Shown here one piece after another: positions 32,727 through 63,400 of a stretch of DNA of 64,000 nt (position 1 is the first letter of the stretch; every line of letters starts with the position of its first letter). The stretch is from Macrostomum lignano (lineage: Eukaryota). A program made the position numbers and the translations under genes. Where the stretch lies: positions 1 through 64,000 of the forward strand of contig NIVC01003721.1 of the NCBI GenBank assembly GCA_002269645.1. Direction: 5' to 3'. The notes under the pieces were generated by a model. That model did not search any database and was not told where the DNA came from. It worked only from the letters and a program-made list of their open reading frames with translations.

Positions 32727-42527
<9,801 letters not shown>

Positions 42528-44219: not shown

Positions 44220-47008
44220 TCAGCGACTGAGGCAGCCTCCATCCCCGCCTCCTTGGCGCAAGTCACCGGTGGCCCCGGCAGTTGCCACCAGTCCTGAGCC
44301 GACCAGCGGCAGCGAGACGCCGCCAGCGCAGTCCCCACCGCATTCGATTCGCCCAACTCCACCGCCTGCATCGCCTCCAGGAGGTCGGCAGCGGCAGATC
44401 AGCCGGCGCAGGTCGTCGCGAAATCTCGCCGACGACGCTGAGTAGACGAAGAAGTTCATCAGCGAATCGGTGACGGACAGCACGTTGGTGACGATGTCCG
44501 GGTGGAACGGCAGCCACTTCAGCAGCTCCGGCCAGAGCCCCAGCGCCGTTGTGGACACGAAGGTTGGAAACTCGAGCACGCAGAAGACGGCCGCCAGGCT
44601 GAGGACCATCCAGCTGGCTCGCTGGGAGGCCGCCTGACTTGACAGCCGCCTGTGCTGACACTTGGCGAGGCTGCGGCGGCTGCGGCGCAGCTGATGCCAC
44701 ATCACCGCGGTGGGCACCGGGATTAGCAGGGTCGGCACCAGAGACTGCGAGTTTCAGGGATTTATTGGGCTTTAGGCTTTGCCAGCAGCTCATCATTCTC
44801 ATCATTTTTGGCTTTGTGGCAACTGATGGGATCAGTGATGAGCAGAGATTGGCAGCGGCGGGATCGGATGCCCAGTGCGGTTGGATCAGAGATGGGATTT
44901 GAGAGTGGTGGGATCAGAGCTGGGATTTGAGAGTTGCGGTGGGATCAGAGATGGAATTTGAGAGTGGTGGGATCAGACATGGGATTTGAGAGTTGCGGTG
45001 GGATCAGAGATGGGATTTGAGAGTGGTGGGATCAGAGATGGGATTTGAGAGTGGTGGGATCAGACATGGGATTTGAGAGTGGTGGGATCAGACATGGGAT
45101 TTGAGAGTGGTTGGGATCAGAGATGGGATTTGAGAGTGGTGGGATCAGACATGGGATTTGAGAGTGGTGGGATCAGAGATAAGATTTGAGAGTGGTGGGA
45201 TCAGAGATGGGATTTGAGAGTTGCGGTGGGATCAGAGATGGGATTTGAGAGTGATCGGATCAGAGATGGGATTTGAGAGATGATGGATCAGAGATGGGAT
45301 TTGAGAGATGATGGATCAGAGATGGGATTTGAGAGTGATGGGATCAGAGATGGTGGGGTCAGAGATGGTGGGATCAGAGATGGTGAGATCAGAGATGGTG
45401 GGATCAGAGATGGTGGGATCAGAGATGGTGAGATCAGAGATGGTGGGATCAGAGATAGTGGGATCAGAGATGGTGGGATCAGAGATGGTGAGATCAGAGA
45501 TGGTGGGATCAGAGATGGTGGGATCAGAGATGGTGGGATCAAAGATGGTGGGATCAGAGATGGCGGGATCAGAGATTGTGGGATCAGTGATGGTGGGAGC
45601 AGAGATGGTGAGATCAGAGATGGTGGGATCAGAGATGGTGAGATCAGAGATGGTGGGATCAGAGATGGTGGGATCAGAGATGGTGGGATCAGAGATTGTG
45701 GGATCAGAGATGGTGGGAGCAGAGATGGTGGGATCAAAGATGGTGGAATCAGAGATGGTGGGATCAAAGATGGTGGGGTCAGAGATGGTGGGATCAAAGA
45801 TGGTGGAATCAGAGATAGTGGGATCAGAGATGGTGAGATCAGAGATGGTGGGGTCAGAGATGGTGGGATCAAAGATGGTGGAATCAGAGATAGTGGGATC
45901 AGAGATGGTGGGGTCAGAGATGGTGGGATCAGAGATGGTGAGATCAGAGATGGTGGGATCAGAGATGGTGAGATCAGAGATGGTGGGATCAGAGATAGTG
46001 GGATCAGAGATGGTGGGATCAGAGATGGTGAGATCAGAGATGGTGGGATCAGAGATGGTGGGATCAGAGATGGTGGGATCAAAGATGGTGGGATCAGAGA
46101 TGGCGGGATCAGAGATTGTGGGATCAGTGATGGTGGGAGCAGAGATGGTGAGATCAGAGATTGTGGGATCAGAGATGGTGGGATCAGAGATGGTGAGATC
46201 AGAGATGGTGGGATCAGAGATGGTGGGATCAGAGATGGTGGGATCAGAGATTGTGGGATCAGAGATGGTGGGAGCAGAGATGGTGGGATCAAAGATGGTG
46301 GGATTAGAGATGGTGGGATCAGAGATTGTGGGATCAAATATGGGATAGGGAAGATTTCACGAGAAGATTCAGAGGATTCGAACTGGGACTCGCCTGGAAG
46401 GCGTACACAGCCCAAGTCAGGGCCTGGTTTCGCAGCAGCGGCCGGGCCACTATGCTGCCTGGCTCCAGGTTGGTGCACAGGACGCCGGCCTCAGCGAGGT
46501 TGGCCACCGCAGCCAGGCCGATCGCTAGCGCCAGCGCCACGCCGAAGGCGGCGGCCAGGCGGCTCCGGTTGAACAGCAGGCAGCGTCTGACAGCCAGCGG
46601 CCGGGCAACCGCCTCGCAGCGGGCGGAGCAGATCAGCAGCACCGTCCAGTTGCGGGCCGACACCAGCGCGTTGATGGCAACGTGGACGCAGCTGGTGATG
46701 GCGAAGCTGGCGACGGTGTGCCAGTGCTCGAGGCCGGTGCGCACGATGGCGGCCTCGGCCAGCAGGGCGCACTGCAGGCACACCTCGGTGCAGGAGATGT
46801 ACAGCAGCGACAGGCGAACTGCGCGATTGTCGAAGCGCTGTCTGACGAAGATGTACAGCGCCAGGGAGTTGGCGACCAGTGCAGTCGCGGCGATGGGCGC
46901 TATGACCAGGCAGGTGGCCCGCTCAGTGTCCAGGTAGTCATGCTCGTGCTCGTCCAGCGTCCGGTTCAGCTCGGACTGGTTGCAGCGGTCGCGGAAATAA
47001 TACAGCAT
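44220..47008 (-). CDS. Orphan rhodopsin-family 7TM GPCR resembling the flatworm PROF1/Rho-L group, 379 aa. Exons: 47008-46394 and 44744-44220, GC-AG intron
   Basis: N-terminal NQS/NRT glycosylation sites; TM1 ALVANSLALYIF; TM3 SARNWTVLLICSARCEAVARP; TM5 YAFQ|SLVPTLLIP; TM6 VLSLAAVFCVLEFPTF; TM7 VTDSLMNFFVY; in-frame phase-0 junction CAG|GCGAGT...CGCAG|TCT. Confidence 0.85.
44860..46340. repeat. Intronic compound minisatellite: ~28-bp ATGGGATTTGAGAGTGGTGGGATCAGAG units, then 15-bp AGAGATGGTGGGATC units
   Basis: Fills most of the GPCR intron. Confidence 0.95.
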
Positions 47009-53383: not shown

Positions 53384-53390
53384 TATAAAT
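53384..53390 (+). promoter_or_regulatory. TATA box of peptide precursor gene 1
   Basis: TATAAAT just upstream of a putative non-coding exon that ends at donor GAG|GTAAGC (53456/53457); acceptor CGCAG at 53651. Confidence 0.6.
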
Positions 53391-53684
53391 AGAAGAGCAG
53401 CGGAGATGGGCTGATCGGATCATTTTTGGTTCGGACGAAATCAATCGACGCTGGAGGTAAGCGTTGCTCATTTTTAAGCTTTGGAGACAGATTCAAGGCA
53501 AGCTTGCTAGGCCAAGAATTTAGTTCTCTAAGTATTCCTTCTTGCCACGGTACTGGGAGTTGTCCGTGCCAAAACTCATTGCAGGATTTCTAAAACGTTT
53601 TAGACCTAAATGCACGGGGCGATTAATTTTCTTCCTTGATCCTTATCGCAGATTTCAAGCCACTTTTCAACGCGACGACAAAAA

Positions 53685-54088
53685 ATGCAGTCGCACATTT
53701 TCATCAGCCTGTGCCTTGGCCTGGCCGCGGCAACCGTCGCCGTGTCGGGTGCCTCCATCGGCAACTACGAGATGTCGAAGCGGCAGACGGACGCCTGGAG
53801 CGGCCACAAGCTCGAGGTGCCGATCAAGTGGCGCAAGCGTGGCCCAGAGCTCATCATTGACCGGCTAGACAAACGCGGCCCGAGATGCTGCTCCAGCGCC
53901 ACTTGTCTGGCAAGCGATTCCACAAGCGCGGCCCGGAGCTCATCATCGACCGGCTAGACAAGCGCGGCCCGGAGCTCATCATTGACCGGCTGGACAAACG
54001 TGGCCCCGAGATGCTGCTCCAGCGTCACTTGTCTGGCAAGCGATTCCACAAGCGCGGCCCAGAGCTCATCATCGACCGGCTGGACTGA
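53685..54088 (+). CDS. Secreted neuropeptide/prohormone-like precursor 1 (~134 aa if one C is restored at ~53879-53881)
   Basis: Signal peptide MQSHIFISLCLGLAAATVAVSG; KR/RKR-delimited peptides QTDAWSGHKLEVPIKW, GPELIIDRLD x4, GPEMLLQRHLS-G(KR) x2 and FH x2; repeats differ at synonymous sites; AATAAA at 54182. Confidence 0.88.
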
Positions 54089-57000
54089 GCCAAAGCTGAG
54101 GCGCAGTGCTCACTATGACTTCGATGCTGGACACTGGTTTTTCCCTGCTTGTTTCATCGTCTGGATCAGCTGGCAATTTAAAATAAATATACCCTTTAGC
54201 TTAAGGCATCGTGCTTGCACTTCTGATATACCATCTTGAGTGGCTGATAGCAAAAGCTAGACTGGTTCAGTAACAATTCACAAACATTAACGTGTGCCCA
54301 TGAGCTATGCAACTTTTACTTAAAGAAGTCAGCAAACAAGCCACATATTCAAACACTGCGAGTAGTGTATTTCTGGTGGTTACTCTGCGGTCAGTGTTAC
54401 TGATTTTGTAAGGGGAGGGTCTGTAAAACTACAAAAAATATCGGCGGCTAAGGCTTTTAGTCACGGATAGCTCTGTCGGCCATCCGTTAAAAATTTACTT
54501 TTAACTTCATACGATAGAAAAACCTTCCGTAAAAGTGATTTTGTCACTGGACGAGTGACATTCAATGCAAACCTCGATGGGCCACTCAATACATTTGCGT
54601 GCATGCTATTTTCAGTTCAGTAGTAAGTTAAACTGAACCATTTAAATGTATTTTTAAGACAAGACTCATGTATTATGTATTATGTATTGTGATAAATAGG
54701 CAATTAGATAATAGCATGCACGGTAAGCAATTATTTAGGCCCTAGACAAACCTACTTGGAGCGTTTGGAGATTTTAAAGCTATTAATCCTAATCGCCTAT
54801 CGCCGGTCGGCGAGTTCTACCAGTCTTTCTCCAATAGCCGCAGGTACAGTACAAGAAAATAAAGAACACGAGAGAACACAAACCGAAAGATTTAGAGAGT
54901 GATAATCCTATATGATACAACTGATAATTGGCTAGACGATTTAATTTGATTATTCAGGCTACAGGATTCAAGCAATTCGCGGCGCAGATAATTAGACTGA
55001 TGATAACGAATAATAACGATTAATAATAATGATTATATTACGCACTGACAAGCGGATCTCAGCTTGAAGAAGAAGAAGGAGGCACCGAACACAGGACCAC
55101 GGAGAAAGACTCCTAACCCCTGGCCTAAGCCAGAACCTACTCTCAAACGAGAGCCCTGCCGAATCGACCGTTCAACGGAGTACCGACTGAATTCTATCGG
55201 CACTGCCCTTCAGTGTAACACTGAGGCCCTCGGGTCGAGGCCGCGTACTTGATCAGATCCGACAGTCTCTATCTAACCGCGCTTGATAGCGACGACGTCA
55301 GACAAGGATGCCGAATCGTTACGCTATAAGACTGAAGCGGTTGGGCGGGGAACAAAAACACGGACCGGGGGTGATGAATTCAGGCGCCTCAAAGCGCGAA
55401 CCAACAAGAGAGGAGAAATCGGGCCACCGGCCGGGAAGCTGGACAAGACAAAACCGGGGAAAGAGAGGCGAGAAGTGAGATCCGATTGCCAAATACACTT
55501 TCATATATAGTCAGAGTCACAAGCCCTCAAAACCCCCCTCAAGCCGGGTGGTGGTCGTCTGGCCGGCCGCTTGCTTAAGCCGAATTGCACCGTGCCCGCG
55601 GCGCCGGGTAGAATTGAAACTTGCCGCGTGCCAGGGTCCAGGCCGGTTCTGATTGGCTGGCCGCGCAAAGCTGGGGTTCGCAGACAAACTCAATCCTCCG
55701 CTGAGTCACAAATTTGGCGTCTAACTCTAACCTGTTTACACAAAATTGATTCTAACTAACAAGGAAAAAGTACACCAAAAACGTATGACTAAACTAAAGC
55801 AAAATAACAATTCAATAACAATATAGAAACGAATGCAGTCAATTTACAACAAAATACACGCAAAGATGCTCACACTACAGTATTCTTCTTTGCTACTGAA
55901 CTGAAAGTAGAAAGCTGTTTTGCTAATTATATATGCCTGAGTGGCCCATCTAGTTTTTCTAGTATCCGTGCACAAACCCGAGAAGTTATAAATGCCTCGA
56001 GAAAGTTTTCTAAAAATCTGCGAGGTCAGTTGGCATCGGATTAACAACGTCCGCCTGGAAGTCGGACTGGGAGACATTCGAATATTGAGCTAAGCATAGG
56101 CTAAGATGTAACAGAAACAGCTGGAACGAGAAGGAATTGCATGTTATTTTAAAGAATAACTTAAGTCTTATTCAACTCCTAATCGCAAGATACTCAGGTC
56201 AGTTTTTACCGACTCACTGTGTGTCAAGATTGCCTGGCCAGGGTATGCTACTATACTCCCATTGACTGCAGCGGGTTGTTTTTGTTTCTGTACGCGTATC
56301 TTTCTTGCCACCAAACGCTTGGCTAGCTAAGTTGGGGCTCAGGAGCCCACAAATATATGGTAAAACTGGACGGCCGGCCTCCAGTCTTGGACACGTCTCA
56401 TTCGTCTGTGCCACCTCGGGAGCCACTTCCCATGGAAAATACTCGTAGCTACTCGAACACTTGCAATCTGACTTCGTCATCAGAAAGATCATCAGGGACC
56501 TCTTGCTTACTGCAACCGGTACCAGCTCTGCATTTCCTAAGGGAGTTTTTCAAGCGTAAAAAGCTTTGAGGTTACTTGCAGTAGTCACTTGCTAAAAGAT
56601 ACAAGCTATACTGTTGACTTTGCAGAGAAAATGTTTCCGCTTTTGCGCTTCTATTCGCTTAAAAATAATTTCATTTAAAGCAAGTCGTTTCGGAATTGAA
56701 GGGCTGGGAGATGTGCAAAAATAGTGAAGCAGAGGGTGCTTGTCCTCGTGCTCAATGGGGGCGGAGGCAGTTTTAGAGCAGTTTCCCTACTGCAACAGGC
56801 GATTGGCCCGGGAAGTGAAGGAGAGAAGGTCTACCATCCCCAGTGCGACTTCTCCGAGGAATAAATTTCTCCAAAACGGGGCGCTGCGTGGGAGTCGCTG
56901 CTGTTGCTGTTTCTATCGCTGACACTGCCGCGCGAGTTGCTCATCCGCCCTGCCTCTTTCTGCTAGCTGCAGCGAGTTCGAAGTATTGGGTAAGCTGCGA

Positions 57001-57299
57001 CGCTTGATGAAAGTGGGGGGGGGGGCGGGGAAGTCAGCGGCTGGTGCTTTCTAGATGAGCTGCAATTTCCAGAAAAGTTCTGACCCGGATGCAGCTCTGC
57101 ACTATTGAACTTTGGACAGTTAATCCGAAAAATTGCTTTACTGCTGTTTTAAGGCTAGAAAAGAGCTGGCTTGCAAAAATAACCTGCAAAAACATGGCAG
57201 TGTGAAACAAGCTGATTTATGCTTTGATTGACCTCGCATGACCTCACATAAATAAAAAGCGACGAAAAATTAGCCCCATATATCAAAACGTTTTTTGAG

Positions 57300-57680
57300 T
57301 ATGCGCATCCGTGATCCCAAGAAGCAGTTTAGAATGTGCATCCGTGATCCCAAGATGCAGTTTAGAATGTGCATCCGTGATCCCAAGATGCAGTTTAGAA
57401 TGTGCATCCGTGATCCCAAGATGCAGTTTAGAATGCGCATCCGTGATCCCAAGAAGCAGTTTCGAATATGCATCCGTGATCCCAAGATGCAGTTTAGAAT
57501 GTGCATCCGTGATCCCAAGAAGCAGTTTAGAATGCGCATCCGTGATCCCAAGATGCAGTTTAGAATGCGCATCCGTGACCCCAGATGCAGTTTAGAATGC
57601 GCATCCGTGATCCCAAGATGCAGTTTAGAATGCGCATCCGTGATCCCAAGAAGCAGTTTAGAATGTGCATCCGTGATCCT
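57300..57680. repeat. 33-bp minisatellite GTGATCCCAAGATGCAGTTTAGAATGTGCATCC
   Basis: Tandem copies in the putative 5'-UTR intron of precursor 2 (donor 56990, acceptor ~57720). Confidence 0.95.
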
Positions 57681-57734
57681 AAATGTATGATCTTAAATTT
57701 CCTCTTATCCATTGCCTCAGCAGGCAAAAGTAAA

Positions 57735-58025
57735 ATGTCAGCTTGGCTCCCAGTTCTCTTGGGCCTAGTGCTCCTTGTCACTGTGTCAGCTGCTCCGGCC
57801 GCCAACGCCGACAAGCTTCAGGCTGCCTCGGGCCATCGGATGAAGCGGCAGACGGACGCGTGGAACGGGCACATCATCGATCTTGGCCGCAAACGTCGCC
57901 GCTGGACCAGCAGCGAAGCCGTCGTCGAATCGCCGCGTTGGCGTCGCGTCCCCTCGCGCTTGGGACCGCGCCGCGGATGGCTGCACGACAACGACGGCGA
58001 CCTCTTGGTTATGGAAGACTATTGA
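57735..58025 (+). CDS. Secreted neuropeptide/prohormone-like precursor 2 (96 aa)
   Basis: Signal peptide MSAWLPVLLGLVLLVTVSA; MKR-QTDAWNGHIIDL-G-RKRRR (pGlu and amidation signals); further RR sites; nucleotide similarity to precursor 1 around AAGCGGCAGACGGACGC. Confidence 0.8.
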   Translation: MSAWLPVLLGLVLLVTVSAAPAANADKLQAASGHRMKRQTDAWNGHIIDLGRKRRRWTSSEAVVESPRWRRVPSRLGPRRGWLHDNDGDLLVMEDY

Positions 58026-58508: not shown

Positions 58509-58680
58509 GAGCAGCTCAGCGGTAACGGCTGACTCTCGCGCCACCGACCCCTGGTTCGATTCCGTGCGCGGCCCGCATTCATTGGGGGCTTGTCGTGGAA
58601 AGTCAAAGGGCCGCTGTGCACCCTGTGTGAGCGTGTGCATGAGTGCGTACCTGCGTACAGTATTGGCGCCCAAAACAGCG
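58509..58680 (+). mobile_element. tRNA-derived SINE, family B, copy 1
   Basis: AGCTCAGCGGT A-box, GGTTCGATTCC B-box; body CCGCTGTGCACCCTGTGTGAGCGTGTG shared with 60808-61060. Confidence 0.7.
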
Positions 58681-60424: not shown

Positions 60425-63400
60425 ATGAACAGTCTGGAGTACCGCCTTGCCGCTCTGGCTGACAAGGAGCAGGTGTCCGTGTGCCACGGGGACGAGCCCG
60501 GCACCATCTACAATAGCCTGGACTATGTGCCGCAGAGGTACCGCATGGCCCTGTCCAGCAGTAACAAAATCTGCGGCCTCTGCTTTGACAGGCAAGCTGG
60601 TAGAGTGGTGAGTGGAACTCGCCGATCAAAAGAGTCAACCAACATATGCTGAATGTTTCACAACAAACTGACTACGAGCCGTATTGGTACCAGGGTTGCG
60701 GGCATCCTGGTCAAACGTCCACAGTGTCCATCGTCTCAAAATCAGAGCTGAGGCAGTTTTGGCCATTCCCCTGACTCCTGAGGGCATGTGCTTCGAGTGC
60801 GCAGATAGTGTACACAGACACAAACTCATTCACACGTTCGCACAAGGTGCACAGCGGCCTGACGACCTCTGGTTCGACTCCGTGTGTGGCCGAATTCATT
60901 TCGGGGCTTGTGCACGACAGTAGGCCGGAGGTTGTCGTTCGATCCGCACCCATGAGGGCCAGCCTCCAAGGCACAGACTGTACATGCCTGACGATTGTAA
61001 AGTTAGGTCCGCTGTGCACCCTGTGTGAGCGTGTGTGCGAGTGCGTGCCTGTGTACAGTACGCTCGTATTAACGCGCTTGTATGCGTGCTCAGGAGTCAC
61101 ACGGACGTGCAGAATTGCCTCAGCGCTTTCAGTTCAGAGTGCCCGCAGCTTGCCTGCGAGTGTTTATTTTTCTAATCAATCAGTCAGTCCATTCTTCACA
61201 AGTTCAGGTGGCCTACGGTCAAATCTTCGTATTCGACGGCGGGCGCCACATGCTGCTGACAGGCCTGCGGGTGCATCCGCTCTACCAGGGCCGCGGAATC
61301 GCCACCGAGCTTCGCAACTTTCTCTGCCGCGAGACGCGCAAGAAATTTCCGGAAGTGAGCCCGGAAGTTCGATTCGGCGTCTACAAGCCGCAGTTCAGCA
61401 GCGCGGAGTTCTTCGCTGAGAACTTGGACTACACATTGATCTCGAAGAGGGTGAGAAATTTTATTGAGGCGGCAAAATATCCCCTATTTCTAACTCTTAT
61501 AAGCATAACTGGGGCATTTTGTTATTTGTCTTTTCAGCACTATTACGTGGTAAGCCGCACGGAAGTTAAAGTTGTTTCAATATTTTGATTGGAGTCAAGG
61601 GAGACGCAGAGAGACATGGTGAGACACTGTGAGACACTGTGAGACACTGTGAGACACTGTGAGACACTGTGAGACACTGTGAGACAGGTTGAGACACTGT
61701 GAGACATTGTGAGACATGGTGAGACACTCTGAGACACTGTGATACATGGTGAGACACTGTGAGACACTGTGAGACACTGTGAGACACTGTGAGACACTGT
61801 GAAACACTGTGAGACATTGTGAGACACTGTGAGACACTGTGAAACACTGTGAGACACTGTGAAACACTGTGAGACACTGTGAGACACTGTGAGACACTGT
61901 GAAACACTGTGAGACACTGTGAAACACTGTGAGACACTGTGAAACACTGTGAGACACTGAGACACTGTGAGACACTGTGAGACACCGTGAAACACTGTGA
62001 GACATTGTGAGACAATGTGAGACACTGTGAAACACTGTGAGACATTGTGAGACACTATGAGACACTGTGAGACACTGTGAAACACTGTGAGACACTGTGA
62101 AACACTGTGAGACACTGAGACACTGTGAGACACTGTGATACATGGTGAGACACTGTGAGACACTGTGATACATGGTGAAACACGGTGAGACACGGTGAGA
62201 CACTGTGAGACATGGTGAGACACTCTGAGACACTGTGAAACACTATGAGACACTTACAATCTCACAATAGTCAACTTCACAATGCCTCCCTCGCTAGACG
62301 GAGTTTCCCCTGTCCCAGCTGTCGCAGCTCCGTGACGCAATCTCCAGAGCCCGCAGCGCATCCGAGCTGCGCCATGCTCAGGAGGTCGTGTGGACCACCC
62401 GCAGCCGCCTGTACACCGCGATGCTGAAGGACTCGGCATTTCAGCAACTGTATAGTGGCTCCGTTATCTCCATCAACTTTGAGCTACTTGAACTGGACGA
62501 GTCTAACCTTGCTGTGCTGCCGGGAGACAGCGGAAGCGGCCCCGAAGGCGATGACAACGCTCCGAACAGCGTCATGGTCGCCACGAACGACGGGCAGCTG
62601 GTGCTGGGGTACGGAAGCACTTTGTACTGCCGGAAGGGCCTGCGGGCGGACTTTGACTTGTACTGCAATGGACTGGATAGGGGTGAGACCGGCCTGGATT
62701 GGTTGAATTAGTGACCGGATTGAGATGTGATGATGGATGTACTTACTCACTGGCCTGGGACATTGAGGCGCCAACCGACAGGAGCGGCCCACAATGAGAT
62801 AGGGGCGCCTACCAAGAGACAGGGGGGCCAACCAAGTGACAGGGGCGCCCACCAAGTAATAGGGGAGCCTACCAACTGACAGGGGAGCCTACCAACTGAC
62901 AGTGGCGCCAACCAAGAGACAGGGGCGCCAACAAAGACACAGGGGCGCCAACAAAGACACAGGGGCGCCAATCAAGAGACAAAGAGCGCCCACGAAGAGA
63001 TAGGGGGCGCCCACCAAGATATAGGGGGCGCCCACCAAGATATAGGGGGCGCCCACCAAGAGATAGGGGGCGCCCACCAAGTGACGGGGCGCCCACCAAG
63101 AGGCCAAATATTTGCACCCATTGAGGTTGCAGCCCGTCCAAATAAAGTTCCCGCACTGTTTTTCAGTCCCTACATATAATTGCGAATTCTTTGCGAATTT
63201 TCAGCGGACTTCTCATCCGAGACCCTAGCTGGTCTGTGCTCAAGCCTGGTGATCGGCTTCCTGTCTCAGCTTCTAGCCACCGATGGTGAGCAACTGGCCG
63301 CAATTCCTGAGCAATCGTTGTCGTTGTTCGTTTCGCTCGACTGTTTCAGCGGCACCAGTTTGAGTCCGTGCTCAAACTGCGATTTGGAGTCGCAATTGTC

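Follow-up and report, generated by a model that had tools for sequence, protein, structure and literature searches.

Contig NIVC01003721.1 of the Macrostomum lignano assembly Mlig_3_7 (GCA_002269645.1) carries two neighbouring genes on the forward strand, here called gene A and gene B, that share the peptide motif KRQTDAW(S/N)GH and that, judging from their sequences, are on balance probably a pair of prohormone-type precursors acting as secreted signalling peptides, i.e., neuropeptides or peptide hormones. This reading is based on a signal-like N-terminus, dibasic sites, glycine amidation signals, and the lack of a Pfam domain. The window, i.e., the whole stretch of DNA analysed, covers 64,000 nucleotides, and its coordinates are those of the contig record. 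The start codons, at 53685 and 57735, are separated by 4,050 bp; from the stop codon of gene A to the ATG of gene B there are about 3.65 kb. The first-pass annotation, made from the sequence alone, had described same-strand genes about 3.6 kb apart; the strand is right, and the figure is that of the stop-to-start gap, not of the spacing of the start codons. The genes are probably undescribed, and a lineage-restricted prohormone-type pair is the best reading of them. The features that carry it are as follows.

53685..54088, forward strand: gene A coding region, Mlig017097 (92-amino-acid models PAA50085.1/PAA88313.1); the 134-amino-acid open reading frame (ORF) is intact in two other assembly copies
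57735..58025, forward strand: gene B coding region, 96 amino acids, Mlig028894 (translation; matching database protein)
53778..53807, forward strand: shared motif of gene A, KRQTDAWSGH (pattern scan, translation, blastn, BLASTP)
57843..57872, forward strand: shared motif of gene B, KRQTDAWNGH (pattern scan, translation, blastn, BLASTP)
53685..53750, forward strand: predicted signal peptide of gene A, MQSHIFISLCLGLAAATVAVSG (hydrophobic core, VSG/A at positions -3/-1; heuristic)
57735..57809, forward strand: predicted signal peptide of gene B, MSAWLPVLLGLVLLVTVSAAPAANA (hydrophobic core, ANA/D context; heuristic)

The shared motif was first noticed in the window sequence, and pattern scan and translations bear it out: translation from 53685 reads MQSHIF...SKRQTDAWSGHKLEVPIKWRKR..., and that from 57735 reads MSAWLP...MKRQTDAWNGHIIDLGRKRRR.... 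The 64-kb window contains exactly two instances of the 22-nt pattern AAGCGGCAGACGGACGCSTGGA, at 53778 and 57843 on the forward strand, and none was found in 100 shuffled sequences even with three mismatches allowed. Nine of the ten motif residues are identical between the genes, and in both the glutamine directly follows KR. A six-frame scan yielded no third copy of the motif, either in the window or at the two further sites where the assembly has this locus.

The two genes are otherwise dissimilar, as had been claimed, and the motif island is their sole significant similarity in BLASTP, blastn, and shuffle tests. When the proteins are compared by BLASTP, the motif stretch alone aligns (9/14 identical, E=6e-5), and at the nucleotide level blastn gives a significant match of 39 nt (85% identity, E=5e-7) between 53777-53815 and 57842-57880. 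In a global-alignment shuffle test, the 30-nt motif reached z=10.6, the stretch from the ATG to the motif was marginal (z=1.95, p=0.046), and the promoter, the 3' untranslated region (UTR), and the coding sequence past the motif had z of about 0. As far as the two probable paralogues go, the peptide core is better conserved than the spacers.

Conservation of the motif at the nucleotide level too, as claimed earlier, does not stand as separate evidence. Among eight motif codons capable of synonymous change, six are identical between the genes, and the local codon usage, which is strongly biased in the third position towards G and C, gives six or more with p of about 0.14. Since amino-acid identity together with codon bias suffices for such agreement, the DNA identity is uninformative beyond the amino-acid identity, and it proves neither constraint at the nucleotide level nor recent gene conversion.

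For the shared segment at least, the genes are probably paralogues. The first-pass annotation saw in them a tandem-duplicated family in which only the bioactive core had stayed conserved; this is one reading of a pair in which nothing outside the island of 30–39 nt aligns. Another is that copying or conversion transferred a tract of approximately 30–40 nt from one to the other of two unrelated genes for small secreted proteins, in which case the island would reflect recency and not long-term selection. The abrupt end of the similarity, with promoter, intron, 3' UTR, and remaining coding sequence resembling shuffled sequence, would fit such an event, as would the six identical codons of eight, although the latter lie within the expectation from codon bias. 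On the other hand, both genes appear to have the same architecture, i.e., a short 5' exon, an intron that stops 14–33 nt short of the ATG, and one coding exon (exon 1 and the intron of gene B being putative), and two further traces of similarity are left. One is the marginal ATG-to-motif stretch; the other is a weak second blastn match (E=0.027) between HIIDLG of gene B and LIIDRLD of gene A, which share CATCATCGA and would pair QTDAWNGH-IIDLG-RKRRR with QTDAWSGH, 15 further residues, and IIDRLD-KR. We regard the copied tract as improbable. An old tandem duplication of the whole gene is favoured, given the same-strand adjacency, the common architecture, the marginal similarity before the motif, and the weak second match; both readings are kept.

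The signal peptide claimed earlier for each gene is borne out heuristically, as a signal-like hydrophobic N-terminus followed by small residues. The 11-residue Kyte-Doolittle means reach 2.2 in gene A and 3.2 in gene B, and after the hydrophobic core small residues occupy positions -3 and -1 in both proteins (VSG/A and ANA/D). No Pfam family scored above the cutoff for either protein. Every predicted peptide of both genes is bounded by KR, RKR, RKRRR, or RR.

In gene B, the signal peptide is followed by DKLQAASGHRM, KR, QTDAWNGHIIDLG, RKRRR, WTSSEAVVESPRW, RR, VPSRLGP, RR, and GWLHDNDGDLLVMEDY. The motif peptide QTDAWNGHIIDL plus a glycine ends at 57887 and is directly followed by RKRRR (IIDLG-RKRRR), a context of both cleavage and amidation. 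The layout of gene A comprises the signal peptide, ASIGNYEMS, KR, the motif peptide QTDAWSGHKLEVPIKW, RKR, and two copies of a repeat unit, each consisting of GPELIIDRLD, KR, GPEMLLQRHLSG, KR, FH, KR, and GPELIIDRLD (KR). The intact precursor of 134 amino acids therefore contains four copies of GPELIIDRLD, two of GPEMLLQRHLSG, and two of FH, each bounded by KR. Such a multi-copy architecture is typical of neuropeptide precursors. The motif peptide of gene A is present in a single copy of 16 residues, ends at 53831 before the RKR, and has no amidation signal; amidation contexts occur twice elsewhere in this precursor, as HLSG-KR, where glycine precedes the basic site in GPEMLLQRHLSG-KR.

From these features we infer the processing, the formation of pyroglutamate (pGlu) and amide, the cell type, and the bioactivity of both precursors. 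The N-terminal signal peptide would direct each precursor into the secretory pathway, where a PC2- or furin-type convertase would cleave it at the dibasic sites and the basic residues would be trimmed. Flatworms possess PC2 and amidating enzymes. Gene B would yield QTDAWNGHIIDL-amide with the N-terminal glutamine cyclised to pGlu, as well as WTSSEAVVESPRW and a C-terminal acidic peptide, while gene A would yield pGlu-QTDAWSGHKLEVPIKW, four GPELIIDRLD peptides, and two GPEMLLQRHLS-amide peptides. The predicted [M+H]+ values are 1364.659 for pQTDAWNGHIIDL-NH2, 1877.954 for pQTDAWSGHKLEVPIKW, 1140.626 for GPELIIDRLD, and 1279.694 for GPEMLLQRHLS-NH2. The peptide pQTDAWSGHKLEVPIKW had been named as the product of gene A; it is indeed predicted, and the list was incomplete, the intact gene encoding a multi-copy precursor.

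The repeated peptides of gene A rival the QTDAW peptide as candidates for the bioactive product. QTDAW(S/N)GH may accordingly be viewed differently, as an element of the pro-region (e.g., a sorting or processing determinant), the functional products being the multi-copy peptides of gene A and the other peptides of gene B. Copy number, which usually marks the main products, speaks for this: the motif peptide of gene A is single-copy, against four GPELIIDRLD and two GPEMLLQRHLS-amide. However, gene B has no repeated peptide, its motif peptide carries the Gly-RKRRR amidation context, and in both genes the motif starts exactly at the KR/Q junction. We hold a pro-region role to be unlikely; as the sole part constant between the two genes, QTDAW(S/N)GH is likely the best candidate for a common receptor-recognition core.

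The gene structure was reconstructed from deposited protein models and from splice and transcription signals. Gene A corresponds to BOX15_Mlig017097 g1, g2, and g3 (PAA50085.1, PAA88313.1, and PAA74283.1), all deposited as hypothetical, and gene B to BOX15_Mlig028894, whose 96-amino-acid product is a hypothetical protein in GenBank and UniProt. The gene models of Mlig_3_7 were derived from a genome-guided RNA-seq transcriptome with StringTie, TACO, and TBONE (PMC5730564), and, the annotation being RNA-seq-derived, both genes are transcribed. The remaining features of gene A and the putative intron of gene B are listed here.

53384..53391, forward strand: TATA box of gene A, TATAAATA (sequence reading; about 25 nt 5' of the first base of the transcript-derived ORF)
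53415..53456, forward strand: gene A exon 1, 5' UTR, at least 42 nt; encodes the 14 N-terminal residues SDHFWFGRNQSTLE of PAA74283.1
53457..53651, forward strand: gene A intron, 195 nt, GTAAGC...ATCGCAG; its removal reproduces PAA74283.1
53834..54085, forward strand: gene A peptide repeats, 2 x 126 nt (Tandem Repeats Finder: period 126, 2.0 copies, 93%)
54182..54187, forward strand: gene A AATAAA polyadenylation signal, 94 nt past the stop codon; kept in all three assembly copies
56990..57720, forward strand: gene B putative intron, 731 nt, GTAAGC...CCTCAG (consensus splice signals)

The partial model PAA74283.1 (117 amino acids) starts at the equivalent of window position 53415 and is exactly rebuilt by joining the 42-nt exon 1 to the coding exon, with the 195-nt GT..AG intron and 126 nt inside the repeats removed. 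The intron, which ends 33 nt before the ATG, has one difference among the three assembly copies, at 53526 in NIVC01000959.1. A non-coding first exon, an intron, and a single coding exon had been proposed for each gene; the exact reconstruction of PAA74283.1 bears this out for gene A, and for gene B the structure is predicted from consensus splice signals.

In the window, the gene A ORF is broken after RGP by a 1-nt deletion near 53878 (53873-53882), where GGCCCCGAG reads GGCCCGAG and CCCC is shortened to CCC. Because of this break the repeat part was overlooked in the first-pass annotation. The extra C is present in NIVC01000197.1 (10189-10199) and in NIVC01000959.1, both of which have an uninterrupted gene A ORF of 134 codons. 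The assembly is based on PacBio reads and Canu (PMC5730564), and the deletion is one of six single-base indels that distinguish the window from NIVC01000197.1 over 5.3 kb; hence it is probably a PacBio homopolymer error rather than the mark of a pseudogene. The deposited annotation covers it with a 125-nt "intron".

The deposited 92-amino-acid models of gene A omit exactly one 126-nt repeat unit (window 53834-54085; NIVC01000197.1 10001-10405). A true intron was rejected here, as 0 of 128 possible placements of the gap have GT/GC-AG ends. Most simply, the gap is a repeat collapsed in short-read transcript assembly, or an allele that differs in copy number. The annotated gene A protein is probably one repeat unit (42 amino acids) too short.

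In gene B, the last base of the putative non-coding exon 1 is 56989, with the donor TGG/GTAAGC at 56990 and the acceptor CCTCAG at 57720, 14 nt before the ATG. Within the putative intron, just 5' of the coding exon, lies a tandem array with 11.5 copies of a 33-nt unit (57301-57679). This array also gives rise to a spurious in-frame upstream extension of the ORF (57585-58025, 146 amino acids), and its copy number differs in NIVC01000959.1, which has indels of +99 and -32 nt.

The assembly has three copies of the two-gene locus, one each in the window, NIVC01000197.1, and NIVC01000959.1, and these are nearly identical, with a divergence of about 0.2–0.3% outside tandem arrays. In Mlig_3_7, approximately 180 Mb fall into duplicated blocks at least 95% identical (PMC5730564), and the threefold occurrence fits this documented redundancy of the assembly of a neopolyploid. 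The gene A coding sequence is the same in all three copies, the 1-nt indel excepted. The gene B copies differ by two synonymous changes and one non-synonymous change; the copy on NIVC01000959.1 (PAA74284.1) has S59N relative to the window protein. A 230-bp segment between the genes, present in NIVC01000197.1 and NIVC01000959.1, is missing from the window copy at 54667, which is either a structural difference among assembly copies or a collapse in a stretch rich in AT and short repeats.

Searches for relatives beyond the locus were negative within the collections covered. When 1.84 billion representative sequences were searched exhaustively with an HMMER profile, only genes A and B and three translated tandem-repeat artefacts came up. 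In a calibration with synthetic sequences, a perfect KRQTDAWSGH alone scored about 24.6 bits, with E of about 2 against 1.84e9 sequences, i.e., under the listing threshold; since relatives that share only the motif fall below it, these null results cannot show that the family is restricted to the locus or the species. No close orthologue from a sister Macrostomum species surfaced, even for the repeat-rich gene A, which suggests that the transcriptomes of these species lie outside the searched collections. Contigs of Joint Genome Institute (JGI) metagenomes, scanned with the degenerate 30-nt back-translation of KRQTDAW[SN]GH, gave no matches. The full text of about 8.3 million papers contained no real occurrence of QTDAW (the matches were MathType encoding junk), though a flatworm neuropeptide catalogue may list it, and zero occurrences of DAWSGH, DAWNGH, AWNGHI, LIIDRLD, PELIIDRL, and GPEMLLQRH. 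The motif went unrecognised at first reading, and no described family with it was found in the literature, the planarian supplement, or the Pfam searches.

One or both genes might instead be young, lineage-specific transcribed ORFs devoid of conserved function, whose likeness to prohormones is coincidental. Protein and profile searches found no homologues, and small ORFs are pervasive in this repeat-rich genome, both of which speak for such an origin. Still, a signal peptide, 7–11 regularly placed dibasic sites, glycine amidation contexts, and a motif located at a cleavage site are unlikely to come together by chance, and the coding sequences are intact in NIVC01000197.1 and NIVC01000959.1. 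We consider coincidence very improbable.

More weight, though still well short of probability, goes to the proposal that the products are processed secreted peptides of non-neuronal cells, such as gland products (pharyngeal, rhabdite, adhesive, or prostate/seminal fluid), antimicrobial peptides, or pheromone-like peptides. A signal peptide and dibasic processing are not specific to neurons, some planarian prohormone genes are expressed in glands and in the pharynx (PMC2953531), and undetectable orthologues are also a trait of rapidly evolving reproductive or defence peptides. Against it, neither gene identifier appears in the supplements of papers on seminal-fluid in situ hybridisation, germline and neoblasts, or reproduction, a weak point as these files are possibly incomplete. 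Moreover, neuropeptides are where amidation signals and multiple copies of short peptides are more typically seen.

Several observations weigh against the preferred interpretation of the genes as precursors of signalling peptides. Signal peptides were judged by eye and by hydropathy (11-residue Kyte-Doolittle means), not by a trained predictor. The most numerous peptide of gene A, GPELIIDRLD, lacks amidation and is unlike any known peptide. Gene B and repaired gene A, as queries in word-indexed protein searches, retrieved only themselves, and neither Mlig028894 nor Mlig017097 was found in the main texts and supplements of the M. lignano papers searched. Finally, the three assembly copies are too alike to inform on selection.

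Going further, we tentatively suggest that QTDAW(S/N)GH defines an undescribed pGlu peptide family restricted to macrostomids or flatworms, its two paralogous ligands being a short amidated peptide and an extended one. In a bolder version, its receptor may be an Srw-like orphan G protein-coupled receptor (GPCR) encoded approximately 6 kb upstream, making this a linked ligand-receptor locus. Were the predicted peptides real, they would form a lineage-specific signalling pair in a flatworm model with transgenesis and RNA interference, where function is directly testable, and they would offer a clean case of two precursors retaining just a short N-terminal core. To our knowledge, every flatworm genome has dozens of lineage-restricted candidate prohormones. 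The gene pair thus stands as a candidate annotation of modest interest, precursor genes being a common kind, and not as a field-changing discovery.

Other features of the window are of mixed nature. A divergent rhodopsin-type GPCR gene with two exons (44220-44738 and approximately 46334-47000) is located on the minus strand, in divergent orientation, with about 6 kb between its 5' end and the promoter of gene A. It matches Pfam 7TM_GPCR_Srw above the cutoff (28.7 bits), with 7tm_1 under the cutoff, and had no sequence match in PDB; a tandem array of 15-nt units (44879-46336) fills its intron. The forward-strand ORF at 61082-61588 contains a GNAT acetyltransferase domain (PF00583, 27.7 bits, above cutoff), and a 10-nt tandem array (61611-62254) lies directly 3' of it. 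A dispersed repeat of approximately 56–61 nt with 80–89% identity, probably a fragment of a mobile element, is found at three sites 3' of gene B: 58607-58669, 60799-60859 (inverted), and 61005-61060. Beside it, 58510-58590 looks tRNA-like by eye and was not called by ARAGORN or Rfam; the window as a whole gave no tRNA or Rfam matches. Tandem arrays are exceptionally abundant: Tandem Repeats Finder lists them in 46 rows, among them an array with 93 copies of a 31-nt unit and a perfect (TAG)x118; the sites include 1605-2721, 33940-36831, 40331-40683, and 44879-46336. Most long ORFs of the window come from such arrays, and all these ORFs are artefacts.

Comparison with known peptide families places the pair outside each of them. 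The GnRH/AKH/corazonin peptides, e.g., Smed-grh-1 with QSYHFSNDWLP-amide, share with the predicted motif peptides the N-terminal pGlu, a tryptophan, and, for gene B only, C-terminal amidation, and corazonin likewise begins with pQT. In that family the peptide directly follows the signal peptide, whereas 11 and 13 residues (KR counted) lie between the two in genes A and B, respectively. Its members have 8–12 residues, are amidated, and carry an aromatic residue at positions 3–4 and tryptophan at 8–9, while QTDAW(S/N)GH has D and A at positions 3–4 and tryptophan at 5. Membership was rejected on account of the internal position, the missing aromatic residue, the place of the tryptophan, and the gene A peptide, which is unamidated and 16 residues long.

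MIP/Wamide peptides are defined by W-x6-W-amide. This family was also rejected: the tryptophans of QTDAWSGHKLEVPIKW are 10 apart and there is no amide signal, and WTSSEAVVESPRW has an 11-residue gap and no glycine. Precursors of the pedal peptide/orcokinin type (planarian ppl-1), with multiple copies of acidic, non-amidated peptides of about 10 residues separated by KR, have the same general build as gene A; the gene A peptides are shorter and have no C-terminal aromatic or glycine-rich part. The IDR of GPELIIDRLD recalls the orcokinin NFDEIDR, a likeness without alignment or profile support.

A further comparison is with the planarian prohormones (PMC2953531). Among these, the peptides of Smed-eye53-2 (A[LV]VPDAWDDWEI) share just DAW with the M. 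lignano motif, and Smed-eye53-1 has TYW, TYF, or PYW in its place; membership in the eye53 family was rejected, since the core VPxxWD[DE]WE is missing from both M. lignano proteins. A string search of the available Schmidtea supplementary files, including the Table S5 of 51 prohormones (PMC2953531), found no QTDAW, AWSG, AWNG, WSGH, WNGH, or IDRL. The first-pass annotation had remarked that, unlike in GnRH/AKH/corazonin precursors, the peptide does not directly follow the signal peptide. This is correct here and is no oddity: Smed-1020HH-2 carries ...KR/QSYLTGGIRY, for which a pQ form is predicted, at an internal position far downstream of the signal peptide (PMC2953531), so that an internal pGlu peptide appears ordinary in flatworms. 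The overall build is alike. Smed-1020HH-2 and Smed-eye53-1/-2 are likewise small (about 75–100 amino acids) and have a signal peptide as well as short peptides flanked by KR/KK, and some planarian prohormones are, like gene A, multi-copy with non-amidated peptides (PMC2953531). Mass spectrometry has validated planarian prohormones of this same build (PMC2953531).

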